Source: Paragordius varius
Taxonomy: Eukaryota > Animalia > Nematomorpha
Assembly (NCBI GenBank): GCA_964247055.1
Contig: OZ176052.1
Coordinates: forward strand, 8,370,001 to 8,434,000
DNA length: 64,000 nt
Reading direction: 5' to 3'
Positions 15,307-63,900 of the stretch are shown piece by piece (position 1 is the first letter of the stretch; every line of letters starts with the position of its first letter). The position numbers and the translations under genes are program-made. The notes under the pieces are model-generated. The model was not told the DNA's origin. It ran no database searches and worked only from the letters and a program-made list of their open reading frames with translations.

Positions 15307-17940
15307 ATGGTTTCTGGCCAATATAACATGTCCCCGGTTGTAAAACTATCCCGTCATAGAGAACGAAAATGTCTTAAGATCTTATTTGCTATTTGCTTAG
15401 TTTTTCTTATCTATGGAACTTATTGGATAATAAGTAGCAGCCGATGTTCTTCTTTTGCATCAAGGGTAAATTTTATTTTTAAATAAAGTTTAATCCCAAA
15501 TGCAATCCTATATCACAGAACCAAAGTAGTAGTCAAACAATGCATATAGAAGTTTATTATGAGGTCCTATGTCCAGATAGTATCAATTTTATCACAAAAC
15601 AACTTTTCCCATTTGCAATGAAACTTAGGGAAGAAAACGAGGCGATTCAAAAAATATTTAAAATAGATCTCTATGCTTTTGGGAAGGCTCAAGTTTGAAA
15701 TCATTTGATAAATATAGGAAATTGGAACCGGAGAAAATTCTACCTTTACTTGCCAGCACGGGATAGATGAATGCATAGGGAATATGTGGCATGTTAATTT
15801 TAAATATATTTATATATAGTCTTGTGCATGGAATCACAATTTTTCAGAATCTAAAGCCGATCCCATATATTTTGTTGGATGCACCATGTCCAAAAATGAT
15901 ATATTTGGTAGTTTTTCTGAGGTACTTATTTATTAAAAAATTTTCAATATTAATATTACAACTGACTCTATTCTAACGATTTATAACTAAGATAAAACTC
16001 GTTTTGTAACGTTTAAAAAATTAATTTATTATATTAATTTTAAAGTATATTTTCCATTTACCCAAAAAATGATTTTGCTGTCTATATGTTTATTTTGGCG
16101 GCTAAATATTTGAAAAATAAATTTTTTTAAATGTAAAAAAAGGAATAATAAACTATCGAAATGTATTTTTTGTTAATACTTAAGAACCGGAATGATTTTG
16201 TGAAATCGTTTTTTAATTAACTATTCAGTGTACGGCACATTATGGGAATTAAAAATCGCACTGAGCAGGCGAGTGTTAAAGCCTTCACATGTCCAGGTAC
16301 AATTTAAGTCACCCTTTAATATAAAAGGAAAAAAGAGACTCTAAACTCTATATTATTATTATTATTAAAAATCAATTAATAAGATATAAAAATCATTGCC
16401 GACAAAATTATTAATTATTTAAATTTTTTCAATTAAAAATTGATACTATATAAAATTTTGGCCACACAAGTTTTTAAAATGAAATTAGTTGGTTTCTACC
16501 GTTAAAAATATTTTTACGTTTGGTCAAAGATTACTAGTAATCGAAAATTCATGTAATAAATTCTATAAGCCATATTAACAATTTAAATATCATTTGTATG
16601 AGTATTATAAAATGATATTATAAAGCCATGATAAAAAAAATGTGTCTCTCTCCACTTATATGCATTAACTATGATTTTGCCCGCTTTTGAAAAATCATGT
16701 CCATATTTTTAAATAATATTTATAACGGTATATTATAAAAGTAAAAAATTGATACTGATTTTATGTAAAACTATATAGAATTAGAATTTTTCATATTTTT
16801 TTCAAAATTGTTATGAAAATAATACCACTGCTAAATACAGGGGTGTCCAACGCAAATGGATTCGCGGGCGCATTTTTGACTTAAAAACTCCGGCGGTCCA
16901 CATTATTTTACACATAATAATGTGAAATGCAAACACAATATAAAAAATTTTTTAGTTCGTAGCAGATTGGAGACTTATCAGAAAAATTGTGTATAAGTTG
17001 CGAATTATATTTTCCAAATTTTTCGTGGGCCGCATTTTGATTAGTTTAAACGTTTTTTATCTGTATATAACATATATTTTAGTTTTTTTTCAAACTCTAA
17101 TCTTTAATTGTACATATATTGCCAACTCTTATAGTGTGCCATGCATGCAAACATTCCCATGGATGAATTGAAAAAATGCGTAAATGGACCTTCAGGACAT
17201 CAATATATGCATATGAATGCGGTCAAAACTTTAACATTACCTCATAAACTTTATTACGTTCCTTGGATTCGGGTTAATGAGGTTATTTACCGTTTTTTAT
17301 CCTATATGCTTCACGTGTGCTTTAAGTTTTTATTTTATAATTGGTTTATTCGCATATATTGTAGGATGATAGTATGAGTACTCGTCACAACATTGAACAC
17401 GATTTATTAGCCTTTGTTTGTGCAATAAAGGTAAAATTGATTTTAAACCCTAATGTATTATAAGGTTTTATATTTAAAGTATGGTTGAGGTCGAAATTGA
17501 TGTAACCAAAATTATTAATCGTATATAATTTTAACATATATTAATCTCATGATAAAAAATAATTATTAAATTTAACTTATATTTAACATAAACGAATTGC
17601 GAAATTTTTAAATTTATGTTAATATATATAAAAATAGCTTTTTTTAGTAGATAAAAATATATTTTTGAAATTAACTTTTGAAATTTTTCTATTTTCTTTT
17701 TTACATTATATTTTTGCATTTATCATACTACTGGTTTTCATAATTGTATGTATAATCGGTCAGAGAGGTTATTATTTTTAACCGGCAATAACCCAATACC
17801 ATATCTATTGTACAAATTAAATATTCCTTTAAATGAATTTAAAAATATGTTATACGATTTTTAAAATATTTATAATTTTTGTATATCGATACAACCAGAC
17901 ATTCGCTGATATGAAAATGTGCCAAAAACCTAACGTATAA
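15307..17940 (+). CDS. GILT/IFI30-like lysosomal thiol reductase, 7 exons
   Basis: Exons 15307(or 15328)-15465, 15519-15692, 15718-15792, 15820-15921, 17135-17281, 17365-17430 and 17899-17940; the last exon is less certain. The product has a hydrophobic N-terminal segment, then VYYEVLCPDSINFITKQLFP, FGKA, FTCQHGIDECIGNMWHSCA, CVNGPSG, YVPWIRVNE and LLAFVC, which are the GILT family signatures. Confidence 0.88.
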
Positions 17941-24600: not shown

Positions 24601-26728
24601 TAAAGTATCGATTACAGACTGAAAAAATAACGGTATAAAAAATATTTAATAGTTTTTTGGCGTGTCAAGAGTAATATCAAGATCTTTCTGTATTTGGCCA
24701 AAAATATGAAATTCCAAAATACAATTTGAAAATGTAATGCTATAACAATATACATAAAAAACAATATTAGTCTTGAGCTTATAAATATTTGCCACTAAAT
24801 GACGGTACAATCTTAAATGCATTTTATCAAGCATCTCAAAAATAGGCCATATAATTATATTTATCATCTTTTTACCGATATTGACTAAGCATCGATTAAT
24901 CGTAAGTATATGTACATCTTTCCGTCACAAATACATTGTAATTGAAAATGTTACAGGGATATTTTTGGTGTAATTACACTTGAATTAATAGGGTTATATG
25001 GATTTAAAATTTTATTTAATAATCTTATCACATAGGCCAAGTTTCTATATCATATAGCACAGATAATTTAATGGCTCATTTTTTGCAATCCATTTGATTT
25101 GATTTTAATTATGAATTTGGAGTAAAATATGAACTTTATTTTTGTGCAAAATTTTTATAAGCCCGTTATTTAGTAAGACATTATTCACAGGCCAATTAAT
25201 TATAAGGAGGTTGTTATAAAGATACGATCATCCATTCAAGGTATGTTAAGGTAAGACTTTCTGATATTTTGTTTATAGGAGTAAGGCTTAATAAATAAGT
25301 TTGTATTAGATATTTATTAAAATATTTCCATATTTCTTTAAAGAAAAATAAAAACCATCATTTGATTACTTTATATCTCATGAATTCTTTTATACATAAA
25401 TCAAATGCGAAATCCATATCAAGGAACGCATAGTAGAAAGATTAGTTTTTAAAGGGTGTGAGTTGTGTAGTTGTTTTAATGTAAGTTCAATCAATTTTGC
25501 ATAGATGTAGGGCACAATTATAGGTAAGATTTTTATAAATAATAATTCATTTAAAAATTTAATTATTTGATAAGATTAGGTAGAGATTCTTATTTTTTAT
25601 AATTTGACATAGCTATTTTACCAGTTCATTATTCCTCCTATTACTTTAAAATGTTTGGTAAGATATGAATTGGGTATTTCAGATTACGCATGTCGAAAGA
25701 TTAATGTCTGGAAGAATTTTTCATTTTAAATAAAATTGTACTTATACATGATTAAAAATAAGGACGTATAGCAGTTGTAAATTTGTGGCTTAAAATTAGA
25801 TTTTGCAAAATTTGACGACTCAAATTTGTGTAGGTTTTACATAGAAATTATACATTATATTAAACATATAACATATATCTGAACGCAATATCACTCTGGT
25901 AGTTAACGAACAGTGGCAATACATAAGAGTAGTTATGACCTTGCAGATAATTTTAAAATCTGTCTACATATGTGCTTAATCCATGTAACCGAAAAATTTC
26001 GCCCCTAACTCCAGAAAATAAAATTACAACAAAAATATCAACCCACTCCAATTTTTATCAACCCATAATGCAATTTAATTTTCCATTTTACATGGGGATA
26101 TGTTAAAACGTATTACAATATTATAAACTATGAAAAATTATTACTATCCGTCAAACGTGGACTAGGCAAATGTTCTAATGCCAAAACCAAATATTAAAAT
26201 GTATTTTAACTTGTACCGCCATTTGTCCCGTAAAATGTACATTAATAATGTAATCATGAATAAAAAGTTAAAATATCTATTAATCCAAAGTTATATCATT
26301 TTACATTATAATGTTACCTTAAAACCACTTAGTTTTTATATAAAAACTTTAATAATATAACTTTAAAGAGGCAAATATTTTTCATAATGTATTCAAACAA
26401 TTGTAAGGATTAAAATAAGGTTATATATATATATATTTAAACAGATTTCAATATCCGTAAAAAATATTATATAAACCTGTTTTCAGAATAATTTTGCCTA
26501 TTTTTTTCTTCTTTGGCCAAATCAACTAAATGTCCATATTCCGATTTGGCTTTAACATTCATCTTAAACATGTACCTAAAAATTACTAAATTATTACGCA
26601 TTGTAATCATCCGGCGGCAAAGTTGCCTGTGAAGATAAAAACATATCATGGGTTCTTTTCAGTGATCGGAATATTAAAGTATGAACAGAATGCTTCTGGA
26701 TAACCTCGTCGTCTGTTCTGGCAGGCAT
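21683..26728 (-). CDS. PLRG1: Pleiotropic regulator 1 (Prp46), WD40 subunit of the Prp19/NTC spliceosome complex, 10 exons
   Basis: Exons (minus strand): 26598-26728, 26477-26575, 24130-24505, 23644-23793, 23429-23530, 23250-23342, 23047-23165, 22655-22794, 22021-22214, 21683-21742. Motifs: [80 protein letters not shown] and [12 protein letters not shown]. Confidence 0.95.
22162..22357. repeat. Perfect 71-bp direct duplication (22162-22232 and 22287-22357) spanning a PLRG1 splice acceptor and exon start
   Basis: The two copies are identical base for base, with a period of 125 bp. Confidence 0.9.
25150..25700 (-). mobile_element. Highly decayed LINE reverse-transcriptase fragment in PLRG1 intron 2
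   Basis: Minus-strand frames contain TTTQL...[10 protein letters not shown] (like the RT motif FLDxxKAFD) and MDDRIFI (YADD-like), with many stops. Confidence 0.35.
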
Positions 26729-35654: not shown

Positions 35655-44558
<8,904 letters not shown>

Positions 44559-46298: not shown

Positions 46299-49200
46299 TT
46301 AATAACCTTTATCCGTTTCTGGTATAGAGCTTGGCTGTTTCAATGATTTAAACAATTCCATTATTGGTTGCTGTTCACTCCGTTTGATTCCCTGGTATCA
46401 ATAAAAATTATAAATAAAATGCAATATACGAATCGAATTGTATATATTACTTTCATTTCCATAATTTTTTGAAACTCAGACCCGTCCAGTTCAGGAAGTA
46501 ATTTCAAGCAATTTTCCACAAAGTTTTGGGTTGAATCTTGACTATGAGGTGTCATAACAATTTTAAGAATTAATTCAGCCTTTATCATACCTTTGTTAAC
46601 GATCTTGACATAACTATATATGTTAGGTAAATAATGTTTGATAATATATATTATTTAAAATTAAATGGTAATAGAAAAAGAAAAAGGAAAGATGGGTGTT
46701 CTTTATGATTTTTGGAAAATAAAAGGTAAATTATGTATATATTCGATAAACCATAACCCACAAATCAATAAATATCATTATAACACATGGAAAGAGTAAA
46801 GCAACGGTGAGTATCGTCATCCTTTTTAAAATAGCAAGGGTTCAAAGATGCCCAAAAACATTCGAAAAACCATAAAAACTATTTAGGAAACAGTAAAATC
46901 TAATATATATAACAAACTTGACAGGAGGTGCTTTTTTAACTGAAGCAAGAGAAGAGCCCCCATGCATTATATTAGCTGATGTAGAAGTGGGTTGACCCAT
47001 CCCCAAGATTGGTAAATCAAGTAGTATGGTTTTAAGACTATGTGTATCAAGCAATAATTGTTCCGCACCAACCATACCGACTGGTTTACATTTGTAAAGA
47101 GCCACAATATATTTCGGAATGAATGAGCTATACAATGAAAAGTTGAAAAGCAAATTGGGCATTTATTAACAGAAAGTAATGGTAAGAAATCATAAAAATA
47201 TTATCAAAATTTTAGATTCATATAGCAGGGAATACAAATTATTCAGCTATCCTTATAATCAAAATTTCCATTATACACTTTAAAATCACAAAATGTCTCA
47301 CAATAAAACAAGATATTATATATAACACGGATTAGGTATAAAACTAAAGAATAAAATTACTTTGCAAATTTTATGCAAAATTGCGTAAAATATTTCCGGG
47401 AATTTGTCAATCGATCGCGTATAAATGGGATTGCAACACGAAAGTTATTGGATATAGCTGAAATGTGTTTAGATTGATCACCCACCGATGATAGTGTATT
47501 CCAATTGGTCTAATATCAAAAAATACGAATACACTACAATATTACGTGTCTTTGATTCATATATTAAATATTTTTGTATATTATCATTCAGTGAACATAA
47601 TTTTAGTTTTTTTACTTTTGACATTGCATTCAAATATGGATCACATTGTGATTCCAAATCTTGAGATAGCATAGATATACAATTACCCATAATACTATAG
47701 ATAAAAATAATTTTTATTGAAATTTGATAAATATAATAAAATTTAGATAATTTACTTTTGGTAATAATCCATTTCTTCACTAAAATCAACGGACTGTTTG
47801 TAATTGGCATCAGCCGTTGAAATATTTTTTGCCCCTTGTATTTTTTCTCCAAGTTTAATTTCCAACTAAACAAAAATAAGAAAATGTTTAATTAAATTTA
47901 ATTGAAAGTTATGTAGAAAATGGAGCATAGGTGAAACTAAAAAAACAAAAGTAAATAATTTTTAAATAAAGTTAATATTAAACCTAAATTACAAAATTTA
48001 TTTCCATATTAATCTAAGTTGATAATAATTAATTTGGTAATATATAAAACAACAAGTAATTTTTACTTTTACAAAACTTTTTCTCGATTGAATTTTATTA
48101 TTATTTGAACCATATAAAAGTAGTAACAAAAAAGTTACCTGTTTAATGGTTTCACAACAATATTCGGCAGTTCCGATAAGAATGCATATTAGAGCTATAT
48201 CGCCTCGGAGTAAGTAGGATGATTTTGCGGTTGCCGTGCCCTCTTTCAAAAACGATGAAGTTAATTCCCGTAAATTGGTCGCAGTGGCCGAACTTAACAG
48301 GTTTTGAGAACTGTGTAAACTAATTACGAGTGATAAAAGAATTTAAATAGTTAATAAAAATGTTTGTAAATAAGGGATTATTTATATGCCATTGAAATTT
48401 GGTTCTTTTAGTGCACATTTAAGAAAAATAAAGTGTTATACGGGTATACGGGTGTGATAATTGAATTATGATTTAACATTTATGAAAATAAAATAGTATA
48501 TGGCAAAATAATTGAATTATGGTTTAAGCTTAAAGCATTGAATTTTGATCCTATCCCAAATAAATTATCTAGGCGCCAATACATTTAAATGCTCGTTAAA
48601 ATTTATTATACATTTACGCTTTAAATTACAAAAACAGACTTCTTATGAAACTCTTAATAATTCGCATTACTCATACGTATATAAAAATAACATTTATGTA
48701 TAGGACTGGGGTTTTAACCTAATGAATGCAATCATTCATTGTCATAAGCAAGTATCATTACCACAAATCTAAAATATATTGAATCGTTCAAGTTAGTTTT
48801 AACAAAGATAAAAAAATAATATAACAGAAATTTTACAATTTATTACATTAATTAACCATTATTAAATTATAAATCACGTCTGCCAAAAATTTTAAATTAA
48901 TAATATGCAAAGCGGTCACAGTCAGAGTCATGAATGCTTAATAATCGGTCCGACCCAATATCAATCATAAAATAAATATTATAAACAATCTACAAAGAAA
49001 ATTTAATACTTTGGCATATTGGCCGCTAGGATGGAATATGCATAATTTTTAAGATTTGGTTTAAATACATCGGATGCAAGATGTACCAAACAAGTAACAT
49101 TATCCAATTGGGCACATTGTATGAGGACAGACTTAAAAAACACAAATAAATCTGCGCTTGAAGGCAAAACAATCATTTTAGATATGGCAGGGACACTATA

Positions 49201-52200
49201 TACAGTAAAAAGTGAATAAAAAACGTAAAAATACCTGAAAAAAATCCTAAAGTCAGCTATATATTTTAAACATTAATTTTTTTATATAACCTATCGTATT
49301 GTGTTGCAAAAAAGGAATGGACATGTAAATCAATAACACATAATAATATATCGAAAATTATAATATATAGTTGAGGTAGGTAGTTTAACAAAGTTGGCTG
49401 TCTGGCAAAAAAATATTAGTTTTATACTTTTTCAATTTTTACTGTAAATGTAGAATTCTTAAAAAATAAGATGCCCAAAGAATTAAATAATTTAAATTAT
49501 ACTCTTGGTCTCCAGTAAAGGGAGTGACGTTATTATAATAGGCATTAAGTTCGGTAACAATAGTTTTTGTTTCAATCAAAAATCTGTCCAACATATCTTT
49601 CAAATTTCTGTAAAAAATATAAAATTAGTAAGTGTGAAAAAAATCGGAGGACATAGAGCACTAAAAAACAGCATAAATTTGGCTATAACACAAATTATTA
49701 TAAAAAACATAATCATAATAGTCGCAATGATGTGGATATGTATATATATTAAATATAAAGTAATCGCTTTAAAGCCAATTTTATAAATTAGTAAATTGAA
49801 TTCTATAAAAAAACCTGTCTTGCGCCTTTATAAATATGTTAAGATATTCATGGAAACATGATGAGATTGAACCAATAAATGGTGATAACATCGTTACAGT
49901 TTCTCCATTACTAGCATTTGCGCCTATTTTATTTTGATTAGATTCTTTAGCACTTTCTTCAAATGGATTTGTTGAATTCGATGGCTAAAAATATGATAAA
50001 TAACGAAAAAAATATTCCAAAATACACATTAATCAACTCGTTAATATTATAAAATGATTGTTCTGATAAACTCACCATCAGCCCTAGAAAACTGAGTGAT
50101 AAAACCTTTAGATTCGATAATATAATTCAAATTATCTTTAACCGTTTTTTGTGTACACATAATACATGCATCAAATGTTATGTGGATTAATGTTTTTATA
50201 GAAAATTTGGTCAATAAAAATACCATTATAATAATGATAATCGAATTTGATTGAGCTGGAGTGTGACTTTATTGCAATGTTTAACCATTTATATATGGTT
50301 ATTTAATTTATGATAATTAATTTTTGATTTAAGTGCGTCCTTTAAATTTTATTTAAAATATGCTAATTATATTAATGACAAAAAAATATGATTTTGCTAT
50401 ATTGTATTAAGTGTGATTATAAATTTAATATTTTATTAAACCTAAATCTAGTAACAAAATAAAGTTGCTAATATTTATCATCAGAAATATTTATAACTTT
50501 TTCAGCAAAAGGGTTCATATCTTCAGCAACCAATTTTTTTGTTTGGGATATTCTTTTCATATCTTTGTCAGTTAGCTCCTCTGATGGATTGATAAATACA
50601 AATTTTTCTGCTAAAAGTTCTTCAAATGCTTTGGTTTTTTGAAAGGCAAATAGAAGGAGTTTAACATCGATTTCTTGATAACGTCTAGACATGGCACGGC
50701 TTAAATGTACCCTAAAAATATGGCATGGAGAATTCAATATGTAAAATATTGGGGTTATCTCCAAAAATAATTTATTTTCGTGTCAAATAATATTGCTTTG
50801 TAGAATATAATTCATTTTCGACACGTAAATGGTATAAAATATATGGAAATTTATTTAAATTGGCACAAAAAAAAGTAACATCACATATTCCTTTTTAAAT
50901 AAGAACATATCATAAAATACTTATTTAACTTTTTTTATTTTATGCTTTTTTTGGTTAGTAAGGGGGGGGGGGGGTGATAAAAACTCTTTTTGACTTGACT
51001 TGCAAGTTTTTCCCATGGCTTGCTTTCATGTGCTTAAAAAATTAACATTAGACGACTTAAGTCAAGCAAGAAAATCTGATTCGGAGGTAATAAAAAATCT
51101 TATCATCAAATAAAACTTGAAGATTTTTAAGGTGTGGTGTAGGACACTCTTGGCAAATTTGAAAATATGGATAATTTTTTTTGGAAACTAGATGTATATA
51201 TTTTAGGTTCATATGTAATTACCTTTGTTAATGCTATAAATTGTTTATTTGATAATTTTTGGCTAATTAACCTATTTAAATTATGTGGATACAAAAAAGA
51301 ATAAATTTTTTAAAAAAGTCTAATATTAAAGAAAAATGCATATAAAAATATGCTAACTTTATCAATTCCGAGAACCCGCAAAAAACTTTGACTCACAAAA
51401 ATATCTTAAAATTAAAAATTTAATACTCATTTAAGATTTTCAAATCTTCGTTTTACATAAAATAATAAACGCTTAAGGTTACTTCACCATTAAAACATGT
51501 TAAAAGTTTATTTCATCATTTATTTCAAATGTAATGTTGATAATCAAGTTAAAATAATAATATGTTATATTGTATAAACATCTTCCCATTATATTTGCAA
51601 ATAAACTCCTAACAAAATGAGTAGTGTGGTAAAATAATGGAGAGTGTTTTAAGGGCGAATGGTTTCATCAACTTAAAAATTTTAGTAACCGGGCTAATAA
51701 AGTAAGATAAGTGTCATAAAGTTTGAAAACTTTGATAAATGCATATTGTATTGAATGTTTAACTTTTTGTGCATTAATAAATTTTGGCTGAAAATAATCA
51801 TAATAATTCCGTAAAATTCGGTTGGCAAAAAATGTTACATTCATAAGCAAAAGACTTGACTTAAGTGTTTTTTATCACCGATCTTCAAGTGTAAACTTGC
51901 TGGCTTTAGTAAACTTGCTCAACTTGTTAAGCTTTGCAAGTCAAGTGCAACTTTTTTATCACCCCACCCTAAAATTTGACATATTTGGTAAAAACATTTT
52001 AAAACATGTATGTGATATATACAAATTATTATCAAACCTGGTATCATGACAAAATTGTAGAGCCATTTTATTGATGAGTTCCCATGAGTCCGGAAAAACG
52101 CCATAATACTTTTCCGTATAATCATTAGCAAAGCGTTTAAACCAAGTAAAACGTTTATCTATTTTGTCAAGCCATGCTCCCTAAATGTTTCAATTTTTGT

Positions 52201-55200
52201 AAATATAAATAAGGCAAATATAGTTTTTTTATAATATTTCCTAATATTTTCCTTAATAATTATATAATAAATGTAAAAAACATTTTTACTTCTTGGCTTT
52301 CTTGGAAAAGTACATTGTATTCGGCCAGTTGTAAGCCAATAAACCAATCTACAAATTCTTTTCTAAAGAGATTTAAGTATACTTTTATTTAGAAGGTTGA
52401 AACAAATATCATAACATAACATATAACTTGTTTTTTATTTGGAAAAATAATTATAATTAACAAATTACAATATAAAATATTGAAATAAAAACAAACTTAA
52501 AAGAAAATAACTTGGCAAAAAAAATGCAAAGCTTTTACAAATTTTTTGGCAATTCATTGAATACAAACGATATATTGGACCAAAAAGTGTTTGTATAAAA
52601 ATGGCAAATAATTTAAGTATCGAATTCATAAACTACTTTAATGAAGGTTCCATAATATCAATAAGGCGTGCAGCGTTAAAAAAGTCTGTAGATGTAGATA
52701 AAACCTAGTAAAAATAAAAAAATTATTGAATCCAAGTATTATGTTAAACTGATGTTTTAAAAAACAATTAATATCAAATAATTTGCAGTTACATTTAATA
52801 TTACCGGTTGGATAATTAAATAGCAAAAAAATTAACCTAAGGTGCAGTCATAGCATTATTTCGAGAATTTTTTAATAAGTAAATAAATGTCCCCAAATAC
52901 AATTATGCAATATATTTTTACATCCTGTCTAAAATGTAAAATTTTGTTCCGTTAACACGAAACCCTTCCAATTATGAAATAATATATGAAATATTTAGAC
53001 CGCGGATTTAACCTATACCACCATAATTTTAAATTGGTTTAATATATTAAAATTATTATAAAAGAGGTATAAATATGTAAAACAGCATATGAAAATATTT
53101 GAGCATTGTTAATATACCCTTGTATTCGACTGACCTCAAAATGGTCCTCTAACATTTTTATTTTGCCAAAAACCATAAAATATGTATTTACTTTTATCGA
53201 TTTTTAGCGTAAATCTTAATTTGCAATGTTATTATTTATAAAATGAAAATAACATTTTAAAAATCACATTAACCTATTTATTTGGGTGAATGTTATTAGA
53301 TTACCAATACATTAATAAATCTACAGTATTTGTTAAACCATCATAATATTTGTAAAAAATATATATATCAAGAACACATTACGTGTAAATATTGCATTAT
53401 GGCGAACAATTTTTTACTAACAGCGTTCGCAATACTCCTCTATACATTTTAGTGATTCCACTGATTCGATTCGGTTTTTTATGTAAATTTAATATTTATT
53501 CGGTTAAAAAGACATCCAACTTTTCTGATGAAATACCCCCTAAAAACTTATCATCTTGGAAAATACCATTAGATTTAGCATTCTTTTCAAGATATGAAGA
53601 ATATTATACAAAAATTATTATTAGTTGTCAGATGTGAACAAATATTTAAAAAAAGGTGGCCAAAATCTTGTAATAAACATATCTTCCCGATTATTATTTT
53701 ATAATGGATTATAACATTACACCCTAAGCTGGTATCAGCGTTACCTTCCTAAACATTTAATAACCTTTAATCTGCTAAAAGATTCATTTTATATGGTTAT
53801 GCAACCCTAATTTAATCAAAAATATTTTTGTAGTCGTTTCCAAAGATGTAGTTAAAGCAAACAGCAACCTGACGGTTAATAATATTGATTGGATCATTAA
53901 TTTTATAATGCTGAATGTGGGTGTGTTTCATGGCTTCGCGGGCCGCATTGGATCAAAAAATCGGGCGGGCCCATGAAGATATATGGGCATTGCCAAATAT
54001 TTATTAGATTCAGGCGAAAATTGTAAAAACAGCTATTTATTTTAACATTTTTTGCTAGTTCATTAATAAAAACTGGTTATTAAAAATTTTTTTCCACTTT
54101 CTCGCAGGCTGTATAATTATTTTAAAGGGTCGGATGTTGGACACCCCTCGTTTAGCAAATACTGAGTTTATTATCATGATGATTTATAAGGAGTAAACTA
54201 AAAATTGATAATATGTATAATAATTATGCAAATTTAGGCCTGCTTATTCACATTATTTTCGCTCAATTCGAATACATAGTGTGTAGTATAAAACAATTTT
54301 TTTGCATAATTAAATAAACAAAGTAATGTCTGATAGGAAAAATGTTCAATTAACATTGTGTTGCTTTTTTCCATATACGATTGTATTAACAATTGACAAC
54401 TATATTGTGATTAAATCAGCAATATACTCTATATCCCAATAATAGTTTTAAAAAGGTAATTTTTAAGGGCAAATGTTAAACCAAATAAATATGTTCAAAG
54501 ACCAACTTGAAATGAATATGGACCAAGTTGAGGTAAAAAAATATATTAATAAAAAACCCGTGCTCCATGACCTGTCAAAGTGTTTTTAAAATCGGTAAAG
54601 ACTTGCTGTCCCAAATCGTTCCGCATTTTATGTATTCTAAATAATATAAATAAAAAATATACTTATCAGATAGCTCTTTCACATGGGGAATGTTCATACA
54701 GTCTTGAAAACTTTCAATAACGTGTAAAACACCCTGTAAAAGATTGCTTATTTCGCTGTATTTCCGTTGAGGAATCAGTTTTCTAAGCCTTAAAATAATT
54801 TATTTACTCCAAGTTTTCAACCCCTTCAACCAACATATGTAAATTATTTAGGGTAGTAATGGATAAGGTCAAATTGCGTTTAGCAATATCAAGTTGACGA
54901 ATGTCTTGGGTTATTTCATTAACCTGATATTATAAATATCGATATACCATGTTCTCTGATGACTCCGCCCTTTCATTAATTTCCAAAATTCGAGTAGATA
55001 AATCAGATATTTGAGATTTTGTGTTTTGAAGAGTGGATAAAGCCAATTTTTCGTTTTCAATTTGTGTGTGGAGATTTTGTCGGATACTAATATCTAATAA
55101 TCTGAAATAAAAATATTTGTACTTTATATCTTCCTCAAATTTTGTTATAACATCATCAATATTAACTAAAGATTGTTCCGTAGGAAATAATTTGTTTATA

Positions 55201-55336
55201 TATTCCACCTCGTCAAAATCGATTGCATCAAGAGGATCTTCACTCGGAAATATCTATATATTATTTAAAGTACTACTGATTTTATTTCGGCTAATAAATC
55301 GTTGGGTATTTTAAATTCCAATTCGTGATTTTCCAT
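46299..55336 (-). CDS. VPS53: Vacuolar protein sorting 53 (GARP/EARP subunit), 20 exons
   Basis: Exons (minus strand): 55277-55336, 55123-55253, 54948-55101, 54808-54923, 54663-54782, 54558-54636, 52637-52704, 52290-52362, 52038-52180, 50498-50711, 49815-49984, 49503-49607, 49010-49195, 48139-48310, 47756-47865, 47616-47694, 47361-47509, 46918-47127, 46451-46613, 46299-46391. Motifs: [102 protein letters not shown] and [20 protein letters not shown]. Confidence 0.95.
50960..51971. mobile_element. Non-autonomous TIR element (family G) in a VPS53 intron
   Basis: The ends GGGTGATAAAAA...GACTTGACTTGC and GCAAGTCAAGTGCAACTTTTTTATCACCCCACCCTA are inverted repeats. A reverse partial copy lies at ~63635-63750. 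No TSD was seen. Confidence 0.6.
53916..54148. mobile_element. hAT MITE family A copy in a VPS53 intron
   Basis: It contains ATGGCTTCGCGGGCCGCATT and ends GATGTTGGACACCCCT, matching the copy at 11434. Confidence 0.75.
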
Positions 55337-55526
55337 GTGCTCTTCTTAATAAATCAACTGATTTACCATTTAAATTTTTGAAATGTGATATGGGATGGGA
55401 AAAAACCAATTTTACGGTTATTTATTATTTGTTATAACCGCCGCTTTGTTTTTATACATCACCATTAATTATATTATTATGGTAAATAAGATTAATATTT
55501 AGCCCCTAGCATTTTAATTCCTAATA
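55337..55526. promoter_or_regulatory. Putative compact bidirectional promoter (VPS53 / TAPT1)
   Basis: The divergent start codons are 190 bp apart. This is inferred from gene arrangement only. Confidence 0.5.
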
Positions 55527-56960
55527 ATGAACTTCAAAAATTATATTTTCTTACAATTTTTTCCTTCATTTTCTGATCTAAATGTTAATGATGTGAACAG
55601 TGCAAGTAAATGCCAAAAAGTTATATCTCTCCTAAAAATTCCTTTTTACTTTGAAAAGTTTGTAGCTTTTGGTTTTATTTATTGCACAAATTCTTTTTTA
55701 CATTTATACACTTTGTTTATAATACATTTCTTTATCATACATATTGGATTTTTTTACAATTTATTACTACTCACTATTGGTAATCATCGAAAGAAATTAA
55801 CAGCGTCTGAAATATGTATCATAGCAAAAGGGTATTTATTGATTTTCGCTTGTTATTTTTTTAATATGATTGATACTTCAATGGTGTATCACCTAGTCCG
55901 CGGTCAAACTATTATAAAACTTTATATTTTCTTCAACATGTTAGAAGTTGCCGATCGTCTCTGTACTTCTTTGGGTCAGGATATTTTAGAGTCCTTATAT
56001 TGGTCTATATCCCATAATTTAAGTGAAGGCACAAATTTTTTGTCTTGCGCTAAAACATACTTTAACCTCATAGCTTATATGATAGGAACATTATGTTATA
56101 TTATGGTTCATGCACTTATAATATTGTTACAAGTTACAACGCTAAATGTCGCACTTAACTCCCATAATAAAGCATTGTTAACCATTTTGATCTCAAATAA
56201 TTTCGTTGAACTGAAGGGTAACGTCTTCAAAAAATTTGAAGCCAATAATCTATTCCAAGTTGCTTGTAGTGATATTCGGGAACGTTTTAATTACGGGATA
56301 TTTATGATTTTAATTTTGGCCCGAAACGCAACACAACAGCTTGGCACTGATTGGTATGCTTCATCATATCGACTCCTGCCTGATATGGGGATCGTGTTGC
56401 TAGCTGAAATTTTTGTTGATTGGATCAAACATGCATTCATTACTAAGTTCAATGATATAAGCCCTCAAATTTATGAAACTTATATGTTTTATCTTGCACG
56501 AGATTTATTAGCACAACAATGCATAACCCCTGACAAACCAAATATTCAAGATGAGAGTTTATTAAAAAATGACAAAATTATGGCGGGTGATACACAATTA
56601 ATTCCAGCAAATAGGCAAATTCGAGGCGCTTTTCTTCAACAGCGGTATGTTGAACAAAATTTGGAGCTAATATGTAAACAAACTGGTTTTACACCATTAC
56701 CTCTGGCAGTTGTCGTGTTTAAAACATTTTGTCAAACGTTTACCGCCCTAATGACCAGCTATAAGATCGAATATAATGTTATATACCATTATGAAAATAT
56801 TAAATATATCATTACTCAACTAATAGCAAATTTGTACCAATTTTCATATACGTTACAATACATTATATTTGGAATTATAAATGTCTTTATATTTAAATTA
56901 TGGCTAAACATCTTTATTGTTGGAGTGTCATATTTAATATATAACAATAAATGCAAATAA
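55527..56960 (+). CDS. TAPT1: Transmembrane anterior-posterior transformation protein 1 (TAPT1/Emp65 family), single exon, 477 aa
   Basis: An uninterrupted ORF with LKIPFYFEKF, SMVYHLVRGQTIIKLYIFFNMLEVADRL, TLNVALNSHNKALLTILISNNFVELKGNVFKKF, SDIRERF, VDWIKHAFITKFN and GFTPLPLA. Confidence 0.95.
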   Translation: MNFKNYIFLQFFPSFSDLNVNDVNSASKCQKVISLLKIPFYFEKFVAFGFIYCTNSFLHLYTLFIIHFFIIHIGFFYNLLLLTIGNHRKKLTASEICIIAKGYLLIFACYFFNMIDTSMVYHLVRGQTIIKLYIFFNMLEVADRLCTSLGQDILESLYWSISHNLSEGTNFLSCAKTYFNLIAYMIGTLCYIMVHALIILLQVTTLNVALNSHNKALLTILISNNFVELKGNVFKKFEANNLFQVACSDIRERFNYGIFMILILARNATQQLGTDWYASSYRLLPDMGIVLLAEIFVDWIKHAFITKFNDISPQIYETYMFYLARDLLAQQCITPDKPNIQDESLLKNDKIMAGDTQLIPANRQIRGAFLQQRYVEQNLELICKQTGFTPLPLAVVVFKTFCQTFTALMTSYKIEYNVIYHYENIKYIITQLIANLYQFSYTLQYIIFGIINVFIFKLWLNIFIVGVSYLIYNNKCK

Positions 56961-57526
56961 ATTATTTAAAATGTAGACTTAAGAAAAACCGTAAAAAATA
57001 GAATGTATTCGCAAATAGTTATCCGCAAATATGCATATCAAATTATCATATTTTTTAAGATCTTAATAAACTGCTGTCATTGAGGTTGACACAAGCCTTG
57101 TTAAGAGAAATTAATATATAATTAACAATGAAGGGTAGTAAACCTAAACAACCATAATTAAGATAGTTTAATGGTAAAAAAATTATTTAATATTCATTTA
57201 CCTATATTAGTTTGTACAAATTAACACGGCTAGTAGGGTTGGGGCCGACCGTAAGAATGCGTTTTAAACGTGAGTGTAACTGGCCAAAAAAATTAAAATT
57301 TTAATAAAGTTTTTTATAATTATCTTATTAAAAATAAAACAAATTTTAAACGATCATTTTCATTTCGATTTAGTTATAATAATTTAATTTATGAAATGAT
57401 GATTGCAAACTATATTCATAAAAGGTCAAGTCTGTCAGCTCTACCAATACTAACTGCTAATTAATTACAATGATTGTATTAAATATGTACAGTGTGCGTT
57501 TGTATATATGAGTTAACAGTCACAAT

Positions 57527-60936: not shown

Positions 60937-63900
60937 TAAAACTGTACAAATAATAAGGACGCGTGTAAAAAATATTTCGATATTCTTATAGATAAAGGGA
61001 AATCTCATATTGGTTTTGGTCTTTAACAAGTGATTTATAAAATTAAAACCTTTTTAAGTAATTGATAGATTTATCGAAAAAATAGAAATATATGCTTACA
61101 TTATTTTAAATAATTTTTTTGGTGAATTTAAATAGCTTCATTCCAAAAATTACTATATAAATATATTATATGCTATATAAAAAACAAAATAATATTGTTA
61201 TAAAATTCGAATTTTTAGGTGTAAGCTTCAAAAATCATTTTTACCCCCCCCCCCTTTTAAAATGGGCATTATTGCCTTTTAAATATAGGCAATAACAGAT
61301 CGCGCCATTTTATATATGCTAAATCAGTGGTACTCACCAAAAAATTTGTCTCAGGACCATGCACCATCTAATATCGATAAAAATTTACATTTGCAGACAT
61401 TTATACTCAAAATAAATATATTAAAGCAGTTTTAGAGCCTAATGCGGTTTGCGGGCCGTGATTTGATACTGTGCTAGATTATGACATAAAAAATATTTAT
61501 TTAAAAATGCATCTTTGTTTAAAAATTTAATTTATAGGGACATTATTAAAGTATTTTATGTTATTTTGTATTATATAAACGGTATAATTGCACTTTAAAG
61601 TATTAAAAACAATTTTCTCAATATATCGACGGCGCATAAAATTTCTGTCAACTTGGAATATAAAGATTTGTTAGTCTTAAATTTATGGTCAGAAATAAAT
61701 TTTCTCACAAAAAAATCCTTTTAAATTGATAAAGAACAGATATATTAATCGAAATTCATAAATAGAAATGTTCGGAATCATCGAATTACATTTTTATATC
61801 TTAAATTGTTTTTTTACCATGCAAAACACCATATTACTTACACAAATCTTTGACAAAAATAGAATTTTTGAACAAATTATCTTTTTTTTTTCAAAATCAA
61901 TTTCCTTCGATATAATAATCTAACATATATTTTAACCTATTATAGCGCAACTCGGAATTTTCGCGTTTATTCTAAAAACTAGCCTATTAGAGGGAGCCAA
62001 AAAATAGACTATTTTAAATAAAATGTTGTTTGCTTATAATTTTTGATGCGTTTATAAATTTTTTGGAATGAGGCATATTTTTATTTAGCATGTGGACAAG
62101 TTTTGCAATTTTTCGAGATGAATGAATGACCACAGGAGTATAATTATTTTTTTTAATGACTACTAAAACCAAAAGCATTATGATAAATTCTGATGCATTT
62201 TTCGATCAGAAAATATATATTTTATCAGATATTTTTTCGGCTGTGTACATAAAATAGTCTTCCATAAAAAATATTTTTTGCGAATATTTAAGAATGATAC
62301 TATCTTTAATTTTCATAACATCTTTGACATCTATTATGTGGACGTCTAGCACTCATTTTAAGGTAAGAGTATTGGAGTTGCATACTCCAGCTGCATTTCA
62401 AATTTAATATCTTGAGCCAAATTTAATATGCATTATTTAGCCTTTAGGGCGCATGATTATAAATAATTTTTTTTAAAAAACTTAAAATTTTAGAATCCTC
62501 ATCTCAAGCTTTTCGCCAGCATTTATCTTTGGGTTTTATTCAATTGCTAATACAAATGGCAAACAAAAATATATTAAGGTTCATAAATTTAAATTAACTT
62601 TAATTTATTAATTTAGTCTTTTTTTTCTAAATACTAAATAAGCTGTGTTACCTGTTACGGCTAGAGGCGTAGCTTGTATTTTTATATAAGCCCGATGAAA
62701 TTTTCTCCAAAATGCTCGCGGGAAAAAAGGTTGGCCACCCCTAATATATTAAATTTTACAACATTTGCTAGTGCGTTTAGAGTAGGATTAGTTAATTTAC
62801 TTACTGGATTAAATATAAAATTAGGTATACGTTTTTTCACCCAAAAATTTTTATTTTACAAAAATAATTGGGTGCTTTAAAACTTACCACCCTGTTTTAT
62901 GGTGTTTCAGAGGCTTAAAATTGTAATGTAAATTAAAATTTATTTTGGGTTTAAATATTAAAATTTTATTAATGTATATACATAAAATATTTTTGGCAAT
63001 TTATATGATTTAAATTAAATTAGTAATAAATACAATTGTAGAAAATTTTTGGTTTAAATATTATTAACATTTGATTTTAATTGGGGTTAATAATACGCTA
63101 AACCATTTTAAATTGATATTTGAAAACTATTTAGTCTCAATGTAGTTTATCTTTAATCTTAACAAGAATAATTTCACAATTAGATACAAGGGCATTGGAT
63201 ATAACAGTTCTTTAAACTGATGATCCGAAGATTCCAAAGCGAGCGTTCCACATTCAAATTTAAGCTTCTATCTTAAAGTAATCTAAAACTATATTATCGA
63301 GATAAATTTTAAGAAATATTTTCACATAAATAATCTCGACGCCATTTCGATCTCAAAACTTACTGTTTTTTGGATTTTATTAATTTATGCATTAAACAAT
63401 ATTAAGACAGAAAAATAAAATAAATAAATCAATAATATTTTCATCTAAATTTTTGCTTAAGGTTAATATTGAACTTTGAGTCATTTTGAATAAATTTTCT
63501 TCATATTCTGATGCATCAATAATGTTAAAATGTAAACTAGTGATATCGATTCATACCTTCCGTATTTAATAAAATACTAAATTACAACTGACCAGGACGA
63601 CGTCATTTCGTATCGATAAAAACAGGATTTGCAAAGTGATAAAAGAAGCGCACTTGACTCTCAAGTAAAATGAGGCAAGTTCAGCAAGGTTTTAGCCAGC
63701 AAGTCTGCACTCTAAGATCGAAGATAAAAAATATATGTCAAGTCTTTTCCTTATTAGCTAAAACAATTTTTTCACACTCAATTAGATTACACCGTTAATT
63801 ATAAAAAGGTAGAAAGAAGATATATATACCCGTTCAAAAAAAAGTGGCGTAACCGGTCTGGTTTCACGAATGGAACCGAGGTGGTTGTTAAAATTACCGA

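Follow-up and report, generated by a model that had tools for sequence, protein, structure and literature searches.

A survey of 51 animal genomes found introns shorter than 30 nt only in myxobolid Myxozoa and in Dicyema japonicum (Hadjez et al. 2026; PMC13644364). The genomes of these animals are compact, the median intron is 22-27 nt long, and the donor is reduced to GTa (PMC13644364). In flatworms, microintrons have a length peak at 37 nt and a second peak at 90 nt (Ershov et al. 2019; PMC6530080). They are clustered near the 5' end beside introns of 3 kb and are under-annotated, and it has been suggested that they are recognised by intron definition (PMC6530080). In Schistosoma, Protasio et al. 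2012 noted that small introns lie at the 5' ends of genes (PMC3254664). Among ciliates, introns are ~25 nt long in Paramecium and 15-16 nt in Stentor; these are unicellular organisms with gene-dense macronuclear genomes in which nearly all introns are tiny. Nematodes are the sister phylum of Nematomorpha. The introns of C. elegans have a mode of ~47 nt, a UUUUCAG acceptor and no branch-point consensus.

We analyzed a window of 64,000 nt from the horsehair worm Paragordius varius (assembly GCA_964247055.1, contig OZ176052.1, positions 8,370,001 to 8,434,000); positions below are those of the window. Near the start codon of VPS53 are five segments of 23, 21, 24, 25 and 26 nt (119 nt in sum) that interrupt the coding sequence. 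Judged from their sequence and from that of orthologous genes, the five segments are very probably genuine U2-type (GT-AG) spliceosomal introns, that is, ancestral metazoan introns that have shrunk to 21-26 nt. This is close to the smallest intron size known for any animal.

We compared these micro-introns with the described systems. Like those of myxobolids and Dicyema, they are 20-30 nt long, have a GTA donor (5/5), lie at ancestral positions between conserved exons, and belong to a parasitic animal. Unlike in those animals, where short introns dominate the genome, only the first 5 of the 17 introns of this gene are short; in addition, the worm genome is repeat-rich, VPS53 also keeps long introns, and its micro-introns retain a T-rich YAG at the acceptor. 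With the flatworm systems (Opisthorchis felineus, Clonorchis, Schistosoma and tapeworms) they share an adjacent cluster at the 5' end with kb-sized introns downstream, a repeat-rich genome, and a distinct short class that default annotation settings miss. However, they are 21-26 nt long and not ~37 nt. Because the phyla differ (Platyhelminthes and a nematomorph), the likeness to the flatworm architecture would be convergent. Ciliate introns resemble them in length and in GTA..YAG ends and indicate that a spliceosome can process introns of this size, but are not known to have a 5' polarity or kb-sized introns alongside. The worm micro-introns may resemble nematode short introns in a T-rich CAG or TAG acceptor and in the lack of an obvious branch-point motif, although they are about half the nematode mode.

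The worm introns have the size known from myxobolids and Dicyema but are arranged like flatworm microintrons, in a phylum in which we found neither reported. The genome paper on the nematomorph Gordionus does not mention introns, and the literature searched, whose scope was without Cunha et al. 2023 (nematomorph genomes), held no report on nematomorph introns. A preliminary description of this DNA had proposed that these may be a micro-intron class undescribed for the lineage. This fits the literature searched, including the silence of the Gordionus paper and the survey of animal genomes, which names other lineages only (PMC13644364). The clustering of short introns at the 5' end has been described before, in flatworms. 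What is new here is the ancestral positions of the micro-introns and the pattern of polymorphism.

The VPS53 gene and its five probable micro-introns

VPS53 is encoded on the minus strand, and its start ATG is at 55336-55334. The window is AT-rich (24-36% GC in 2-kb bins). Two regions of it match Pfam Vps53_N (54933-55208 and 50471-50764), and one matches VPS53_C (46364-47162). The features of the locus are as follows.

55527-56960, plus strand: TAPT1/DUF747 open reading frame (Pfam), divergent neighbor of VPS53
55337-55526: spacer of 190 nt between the start codons of VPS53 and TAPT1
55277-55336, minus strand: exon 1, 60 nt; its product aligns with human and mite VPS53 N-termini
55254-55276, minus strand: micro-intron 1, 23 nt, phase 0, GTA..TAG
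55123-55253, minus strand: exon 2, 131 nt; equal in length to exon 2 of the mite, to 81+50 in sponge and fish, and to the exon in contig L004
55102-55122, minus strand: micro-intron 2, 21 nt, phase 2, GTA..CAG, stop-free and a multiple of three
54948-55101, minus strand: exon 3, 154 nt; equal in length to exon 3 of the mite and to 67+87 in sponge and fish
54924-54947, minus strand: micro-intron 3, 24 nt, phase 0, GTA..CAG, with an in-frame TAA
54808-54923, minus strand: exon 4, 116 nt; same length as the sponge exon; 66% identity to Capsaspora
54783-54807, minus strand: micro-intron 4, 25 nt, phase 2, GTA..TAG
54663-54782, minus strand: exon 5, 120 nt; same length as the sponge exon
54637-54662, minus strand: micro-intron 5, 26 nt, phase 2, GTA..TAG, 8% GC
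54558-54636, minus strand: exon 6, 79 nt; matches the sponge exon in length and, like it, ends in phase 0
52705-54557, minus strand: intron 6, 1853 nt, with a copy of a dispersed repeat at 53930-54064
52637-52704, minus strand: exon 7, 68 nt; best-scoring single intermediate exon between exon 6 and the KEFVDWF block in a constrained search
46451-52636, minus strand: rest of VPS53 with introns 7-17, from tblastn anchors and splice-site refinement against Capsaspora and mite VPS53
within 46451-52636, minus strand: introns 7-12, of about 274, 109, 1326, 615-666, 568 and 690 nt
within 46451-52636, minus strand: introns 13-17, of about 273, 61, 106, 233 and 304-310 nt

Several of the boundaries within 46451-52636 are approximate. 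Exon 7 contains an IDIMEPSLK stretch that would fit the VPS53 family in that region. Another candidate exon, found by tblastn at 52392-52439, was rejected; every GT..AG combination for it loses the frame, and exon 7 at 52637-52704 fits.

We found that the unspliced sequence cannot be read as VPS53. The frame is broken at the 23-, 25- and 26-nt segments, and the 24-nt segment contains a TAA stop. Only the 21-nt segment reads through, adding seven residues. With the segments removed, exons 1 to 6 (60, 131, 154, 116, 120 and 79 nt) form a frame of 220 aa without stops, and the rest of the gene up to VPS53_C is a full, stop-free exon set. Exon 1 ends in phase 0 directly before the conserved [IVL]FPS.DPLD block. 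These results bear out the preliminary description, which had placed five GT..AG segments at exactly these minus-strand coordinates and lengths, had four of them breaking the frame or carrying a stop, and had the fifth as a stop-free insert divisible by three.

All five segments start with GTA and end with TAG or CAG, and their GC content is 8-21%. In most of them the YAG is preceded by T-rich stretches, and the five sequences gave no branch-point consensus. U12-type introns are marked by an [AG]TATCCTT donor and a TCCTTAAC branch site. None of the micro-introns (0/5) matched the U12-type donor.

We found that homologous proteins lack the residues encoded by the 21-nt segment. The unspliced open reading frame of exons 2 and 3 was used as a phmmer query against 1.84 billion representatives. 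In all 15 hits, 87-88 query residues aligned to 80-81 target residues; in the Pfam Vps53_N match, 88 query residues aligned to 81 profile positions. Because the phmmer and Pfam spans are shorter, the VPS53 family is without the seven residues. Among the 15 matches are VPS53 proteins from Capsaspora, a trombidid mite, a sponge, a mollusc and vertebrates. When the segments were removed, all five junctions were gap-free in comparisons by tblastn and MAFFT with Capsaspora, mite, sponge, human and mollusc. Removal had been said to restore collinearity with the VPS53 family, and it does so at each junction, with the seven residues missing from every homologue (15/15).

The divergent neighbor of VPS53 links the window to another nematomorph. 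The best match of TAPT1 was to Gordionus sp. m RMFG-2023 (48% identity; 364 bits vs 299 bits for the next match), and a maximum likelihood tree joined the two sequences with support of 100/100; the branch of the window sequence is long and compositionally odd, which makes this placement somewhat less certain. The TAPT1 locus of Gordionus has one intron, of 42 nt, and VPS53 does not adjoin it there. In P. varius, the 190-nt spacer would probably act as a shared promoter of VPS53 and TAPT1.

Intron positions in VPS53 orthologues

We compared the intron positions with those of three orthologues, whose gene structures were solved so that they reproduce the annotated products exactly.

Leptotrombidium (mite): exons 108, 131, 154, ... 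nt; introns 48, 50, 44 nt
Oopsacas (sponge): exons 24, 81, 50, 67, 87, 116, 120, 79, ... nt; introns 63-1469 nt
Crenichthys (fish): exons 87, 81, 50, 67, 87, ... nt; introns 191-8255 nt
Paragordius varius: exons 60, 131, 154, 116, 120, 79 nt; introns 23, 21, 24, 25, 26, then 1853 nt

Introns 1-6 of the worm have phases 0, 2, 0, 2, 2 and 0. We found that they share alignment column and phase with mite introns 1-3, fish introns 1-3 and sponge introns 2-6. Sponge intron 1 probably matches worm intron 1 as well and appears shifted only by an alignment gap. The counterparts in the same column and phase are of 48 nt (mite) and 191 nt (fish) for micro-intron 1; 50 nt (mite), 456 nt (sponge) and 976 nt (fish) for micro-intron 2; 44 nt (mite), 911 nt (sponge) and 1252 nt (fish) for micro-intron 3; and, in sponge, 1469 nt for micro-intron 4 and 913 nt for micro-intron 5. 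In sponge and fish, pairs of exons add up to exons 2 and 3 of worm and mite (81+50 = 131; 67+87 = 154), and two further ancestral introns have been lost in both worm and mite. An arthropod-like Logan contig (L004) also has an exon 2 of 131 nt, flanked by introns of ~324 and ~55 nt. By our own estimate, which takes ~8 intron sites and ~735 combinations of site and phase, the chance of five position matches out of five would be of the order of 1e-10.

Because column, phase and exon lengths equal those of the orthologues, the five micro-introns are best read as ancestral metazoan introns that have shrunk, not as introns gained. The preliminary description had called for a comparison with orthologues to tell these two apart, and mite, sponge and fish agree on ancestral shrinkage. 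VPS53 is a clean case, as six intron positions can be traced from the sponge (63-1469 nt) through the mite (44-50 nt) to the worm (21-26 nt at the first five). Separately, a short human VPS53 isoform diverges at the column of micro-intron 5.

The 21-nt segment could alone be wholly or partly retained and encode a seven-residue insert of an alternative isoform. It is stop-free and divisible by three, and no variant falls inside it among the best 40 of 254 differences between the window and sequencing-run contigs (described below). However, its GTA..CAG ends lie exactly at the phase-2 intron position of mite, sponge and fish, the insert is missing from 15/15 homologues, and its composition is like that of the other micro-introns. 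We consider retention unlikely, and treat the 21-nt segment as an intron together with the other four.

Variation among sequencing runs

We compared the window over 51900-57300 with Logan contigs of four sequencing runs (X1, X3, X4 and X5), which represent at least two samples. In these runs, exons, intron 6 and the intergenic spacer were covered to roughly the same depth, and there were no joints at the micro-introns. Because of the even depth and the absence of joints, we conclude that the four runs are genomic DNA. Contigs from another sample (records 21, 22, 28 and 29), ~3% diverged, cover all five segments with 0 gaps.

These data bear on two explanations in which the segments would not be introns. 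The first, which the preliminary description had named as a possible refutation, is that they are indel artefacts of assembly or polishing of the reference. AT-rich low-complexity DNA is error-prone, as this explanation would need. However, in contigs of the four DNA runs each of the five segments is present in full and without gaps, and the segments differ in length only by the allele of intron 1 with a 1-nt insertion. Because independent DNA carries the five segments gap-free, we exclude an assembly indel artefact for practical purposes and regard it as extremely improbable. The second is that the segments are removed from DNA by programmed elimination, like the internal eliminated sequences (IESs) of ciliates, and not by RNA splicing. 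The segments are similar in size to ciliate IESs, and DNA elimination is known in some nematodes. But there were no joints skipping the segments in the four DNA runs, and the segments are bounded by GT..AG, at places where spliceosomal introns lie, and not by TA. We give this explanation hardly any credence, equal to that of an artefact, and continue to favor spliceosomal introns.

Among the 40 best-supported of 254 differences, we found that the variants within 54558-55336 were concentrated in the micro-introns. The micro-introns (119 nt) contained five substitutions and a 1-nt insertion, and the five were more than expected among the nine substitutions listed (binomial p=0.006). The four exon variants listed were all synonymous in the spliced frame: three in exon 2 and one in exon 3 (at 55097). 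Furthermore, two X1 contigs differed from the window at six sites in 920 nt, and all six were inside micro-introns.

The alleles also favor particular splice sites. In micro-intron 1, other DNA runs have two substitutions and the 1-nt insertion, which makes a 24-nt allele; alleles of 23 and 24 nt would cause a frameshift if the segment were coding. The variant alleles lose the inner GT, a 20-nt alternative donor, and keep the outer GT and the AG. Micro-intron 4 has two variants, at 54786 and 54789; the one at 54789 destroys a 19-nt alternative acceptor, and the 25-nt acceptor is kept. The variants thus remove the alternative GT and AG and spare the proposed ones, which supports the 23- and 25-nt versions. 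Micro-intron 3 has a variant at 54933.

A further explanation is that the VPS53 locus is a decaying pseudogene, in which the segments are small insertions that resemble introns by chance. Four of the five do disrupt the frame if read through, and we found no transcript match: in RNA-labelled runs of the species, 0.00 of the sampled words were present. Similarly, a search of a protein collection with the 92-aa open reading frame of exons 2 and 3 gave no matching fragment of 51-161 aa. However, a pseudogene would need five insertions at ancestral intron positions, each with GT..AG ends; the remaining exon set is complete and stop-free up to VPS53_C; and the exon variants among the best 40 of 254 differences are all synonymous. 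We consider a pseudogene very unlikely.

Our results are most consistent with spliceosomal introns, as had been proposed at the outset. This reading is strongly supported by the GT..AG ends, by the restored frame and collinearity, by the ancestral positions and phases, and by the polymorphism, all of them properties of the DNA.

Intron-length polarity and its possible meaning

VPS53 has a sharp polarity of intron length, because introns 1-5, less than 700 nt from the ATG, are micro-introns and none of introns 6-17 is. Five of the 17 introns are shorter than 30 nt; the remaining 12 have lengths of 61-1853 nt. The two longest (introns 6 and 9; 1853 and ~1326 nt) each contain one copy of a dispersed repeat, of which the window has a second copy at another place, and show depth spikes of 25-100x in the DNA runs. 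For the repeat in intron 6, the second copy is at 38031-38165, and DNA depth is ~25x at 53891-54071. Searches of the long introns for transposon ends by inverted repeats and motifs gave nothing useful. The claim that the same gene has kb-sized introns filled with transposable elements is correct as to size (1853 and ~1326 nt), but "filled" overstates what are repeat fragments only. Searched against Rfam, the window gave no match to an snRNA or to any other RNA family.

The two kinds of intron might be handled as follows. The micro-introns would be defined across the intron itself (intron definition), probably during transcription and close to the promoter, and the signals may be the minimal GTA donor and the T-rich YAG acceptor. 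The longer introns downstream, tolerant of repeat insertions, would be processed in the usual way. That the micro-introns are excised from RNA, and how they are recognised, are put forward here as predictions.

The genome paper on Gordionus gives 26.9% GC, 64% repeats and a BUSCO score of 71.6%. The GC and repeat content of Gordionus resemble those of the window. Micro-introns of this kind may have contributed to this BUSCO score.

We tentatively suggest, as a proposal that may well prove wrong, that introns of 21-27 nt form a promoter-proximal class in horsehair worms. These would have arisen from ancestral introns shrunk to the lower limit of the spliceosome, amid a large repeat-rich genome with kb-sized introns downstream. 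The class would be a third, architecturally different origin of animal introns shorter than 30 nt. Such introns are ignored by common gene finders and aligners, so that some of the low BUSCO scores and of the "rampant gene loss" reported for nematomorphs would then be an annotation artefact. Nematomorph gene models and completeness scores are likely damaged wherever the minimum intron length is set above ~20.

If the proposal is true, a third lineage with introns shorter than 30 nt, in Ecdysozoa, would alter the picture of two lineages with compact genomes (PMC13644364). Tiny introns at the starts of genes beside long repeat-bearing introns would mean that extreme shrinkage can occur without genome compaction, and that one spliceosome serves both regimes of intron size within a single transcript.

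Micro-introns and VPS53 gene structure

We found that candidate micro-introns in two other genes of the window resemble those of VPS53 in their ends and base make-up. These candidates came from the first reading of the sequence:

15693-15819, plus strand: two micro-introns (25 and 27 nt) of a GILT-like gene
26576-26597, minus strand: micro-intron (22 nt) of PLRG1

A check of their ends showed the form GT[AT]...TAG, and they are as AT-rich as the VPS53 micro-introns.

We also compared the worm gene with the VPS53 5' end in a genomic contig with 30% GC:

L004 (Logan contig of SRR29757501), 469-1216: VPS53 5' end

Exon 2 of this gene is 131 nt long, as in the worm. Its introns at the positions of worm VPS53 introns 1 and 2 measure about 324 and 55 nt. 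The source of the contig is a mite-like animal.

The VPS53-TAPT1 gene pair

VPS53 is arranged head to head with a TAPT1/DUF747 homologue, and the two start codons are just 190 nt apart. The spacer between the genes is probably a bidirectional promoter.

Within 55337-56960, plus strand: TAPT1/DUF747 homologue, a single ORF (477 aa)
Within 55706-55851: tandem repeat in the TAPT1 ORF, with 2.4 copies of a 15-nt unit

TAPT1 of the nematomorph Gordionus does not adjoin VPS53, and its coding sequence is interrupted after codon 46 by a single intron of 42 nt. Contigs from three sequencing runs had 17 different letters in place of 55740-55850 of the ORF. Because the sides of the joint were just 22 nt, this replacement may derive from a repeat elsewhere.

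Repeats and a candidate homeobox gene

DNA word depth at 51900-52080 and 53891-54071 was 25-100 times that of flanking sequence, and loose ends were numerous at 51937/51969 and 54022-54065. The raised depth and loose ends therefore point to high-copy dispersed repeats.

38031-38165 and 63636-63754: diverged repeat copies
43128-43502, minus strand: LINE-type reverse-transcriptase tail

Inside VPS53 intron 6 (1853 nt), 53348-53890 was covered in runs X1 and X3 and had near-zero depth in X4 and X5 (sample S3). This stretch may be an insertion or deletion, or highly diverged, between samples. Plus-strand ORFs at 41818-44558 suggest a LIM-homeobox gene, since they encode a homeodomain motif together with cysteine patterns resembling those of LIM domains.

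Variation in the VPS53 micro-introns

Two contigs from run X1, which behaved as genomic DNA, had only six differences from the window across 920 nt of 54549-55723. All of these (6/6) were within micro-introns 1 (55254-55276), 3 (54924-54947) and 4 (54783-54807); the intergenic spacer beside VPS53 had none (0/6). The VPS53 micro-introns may be hypervariable.
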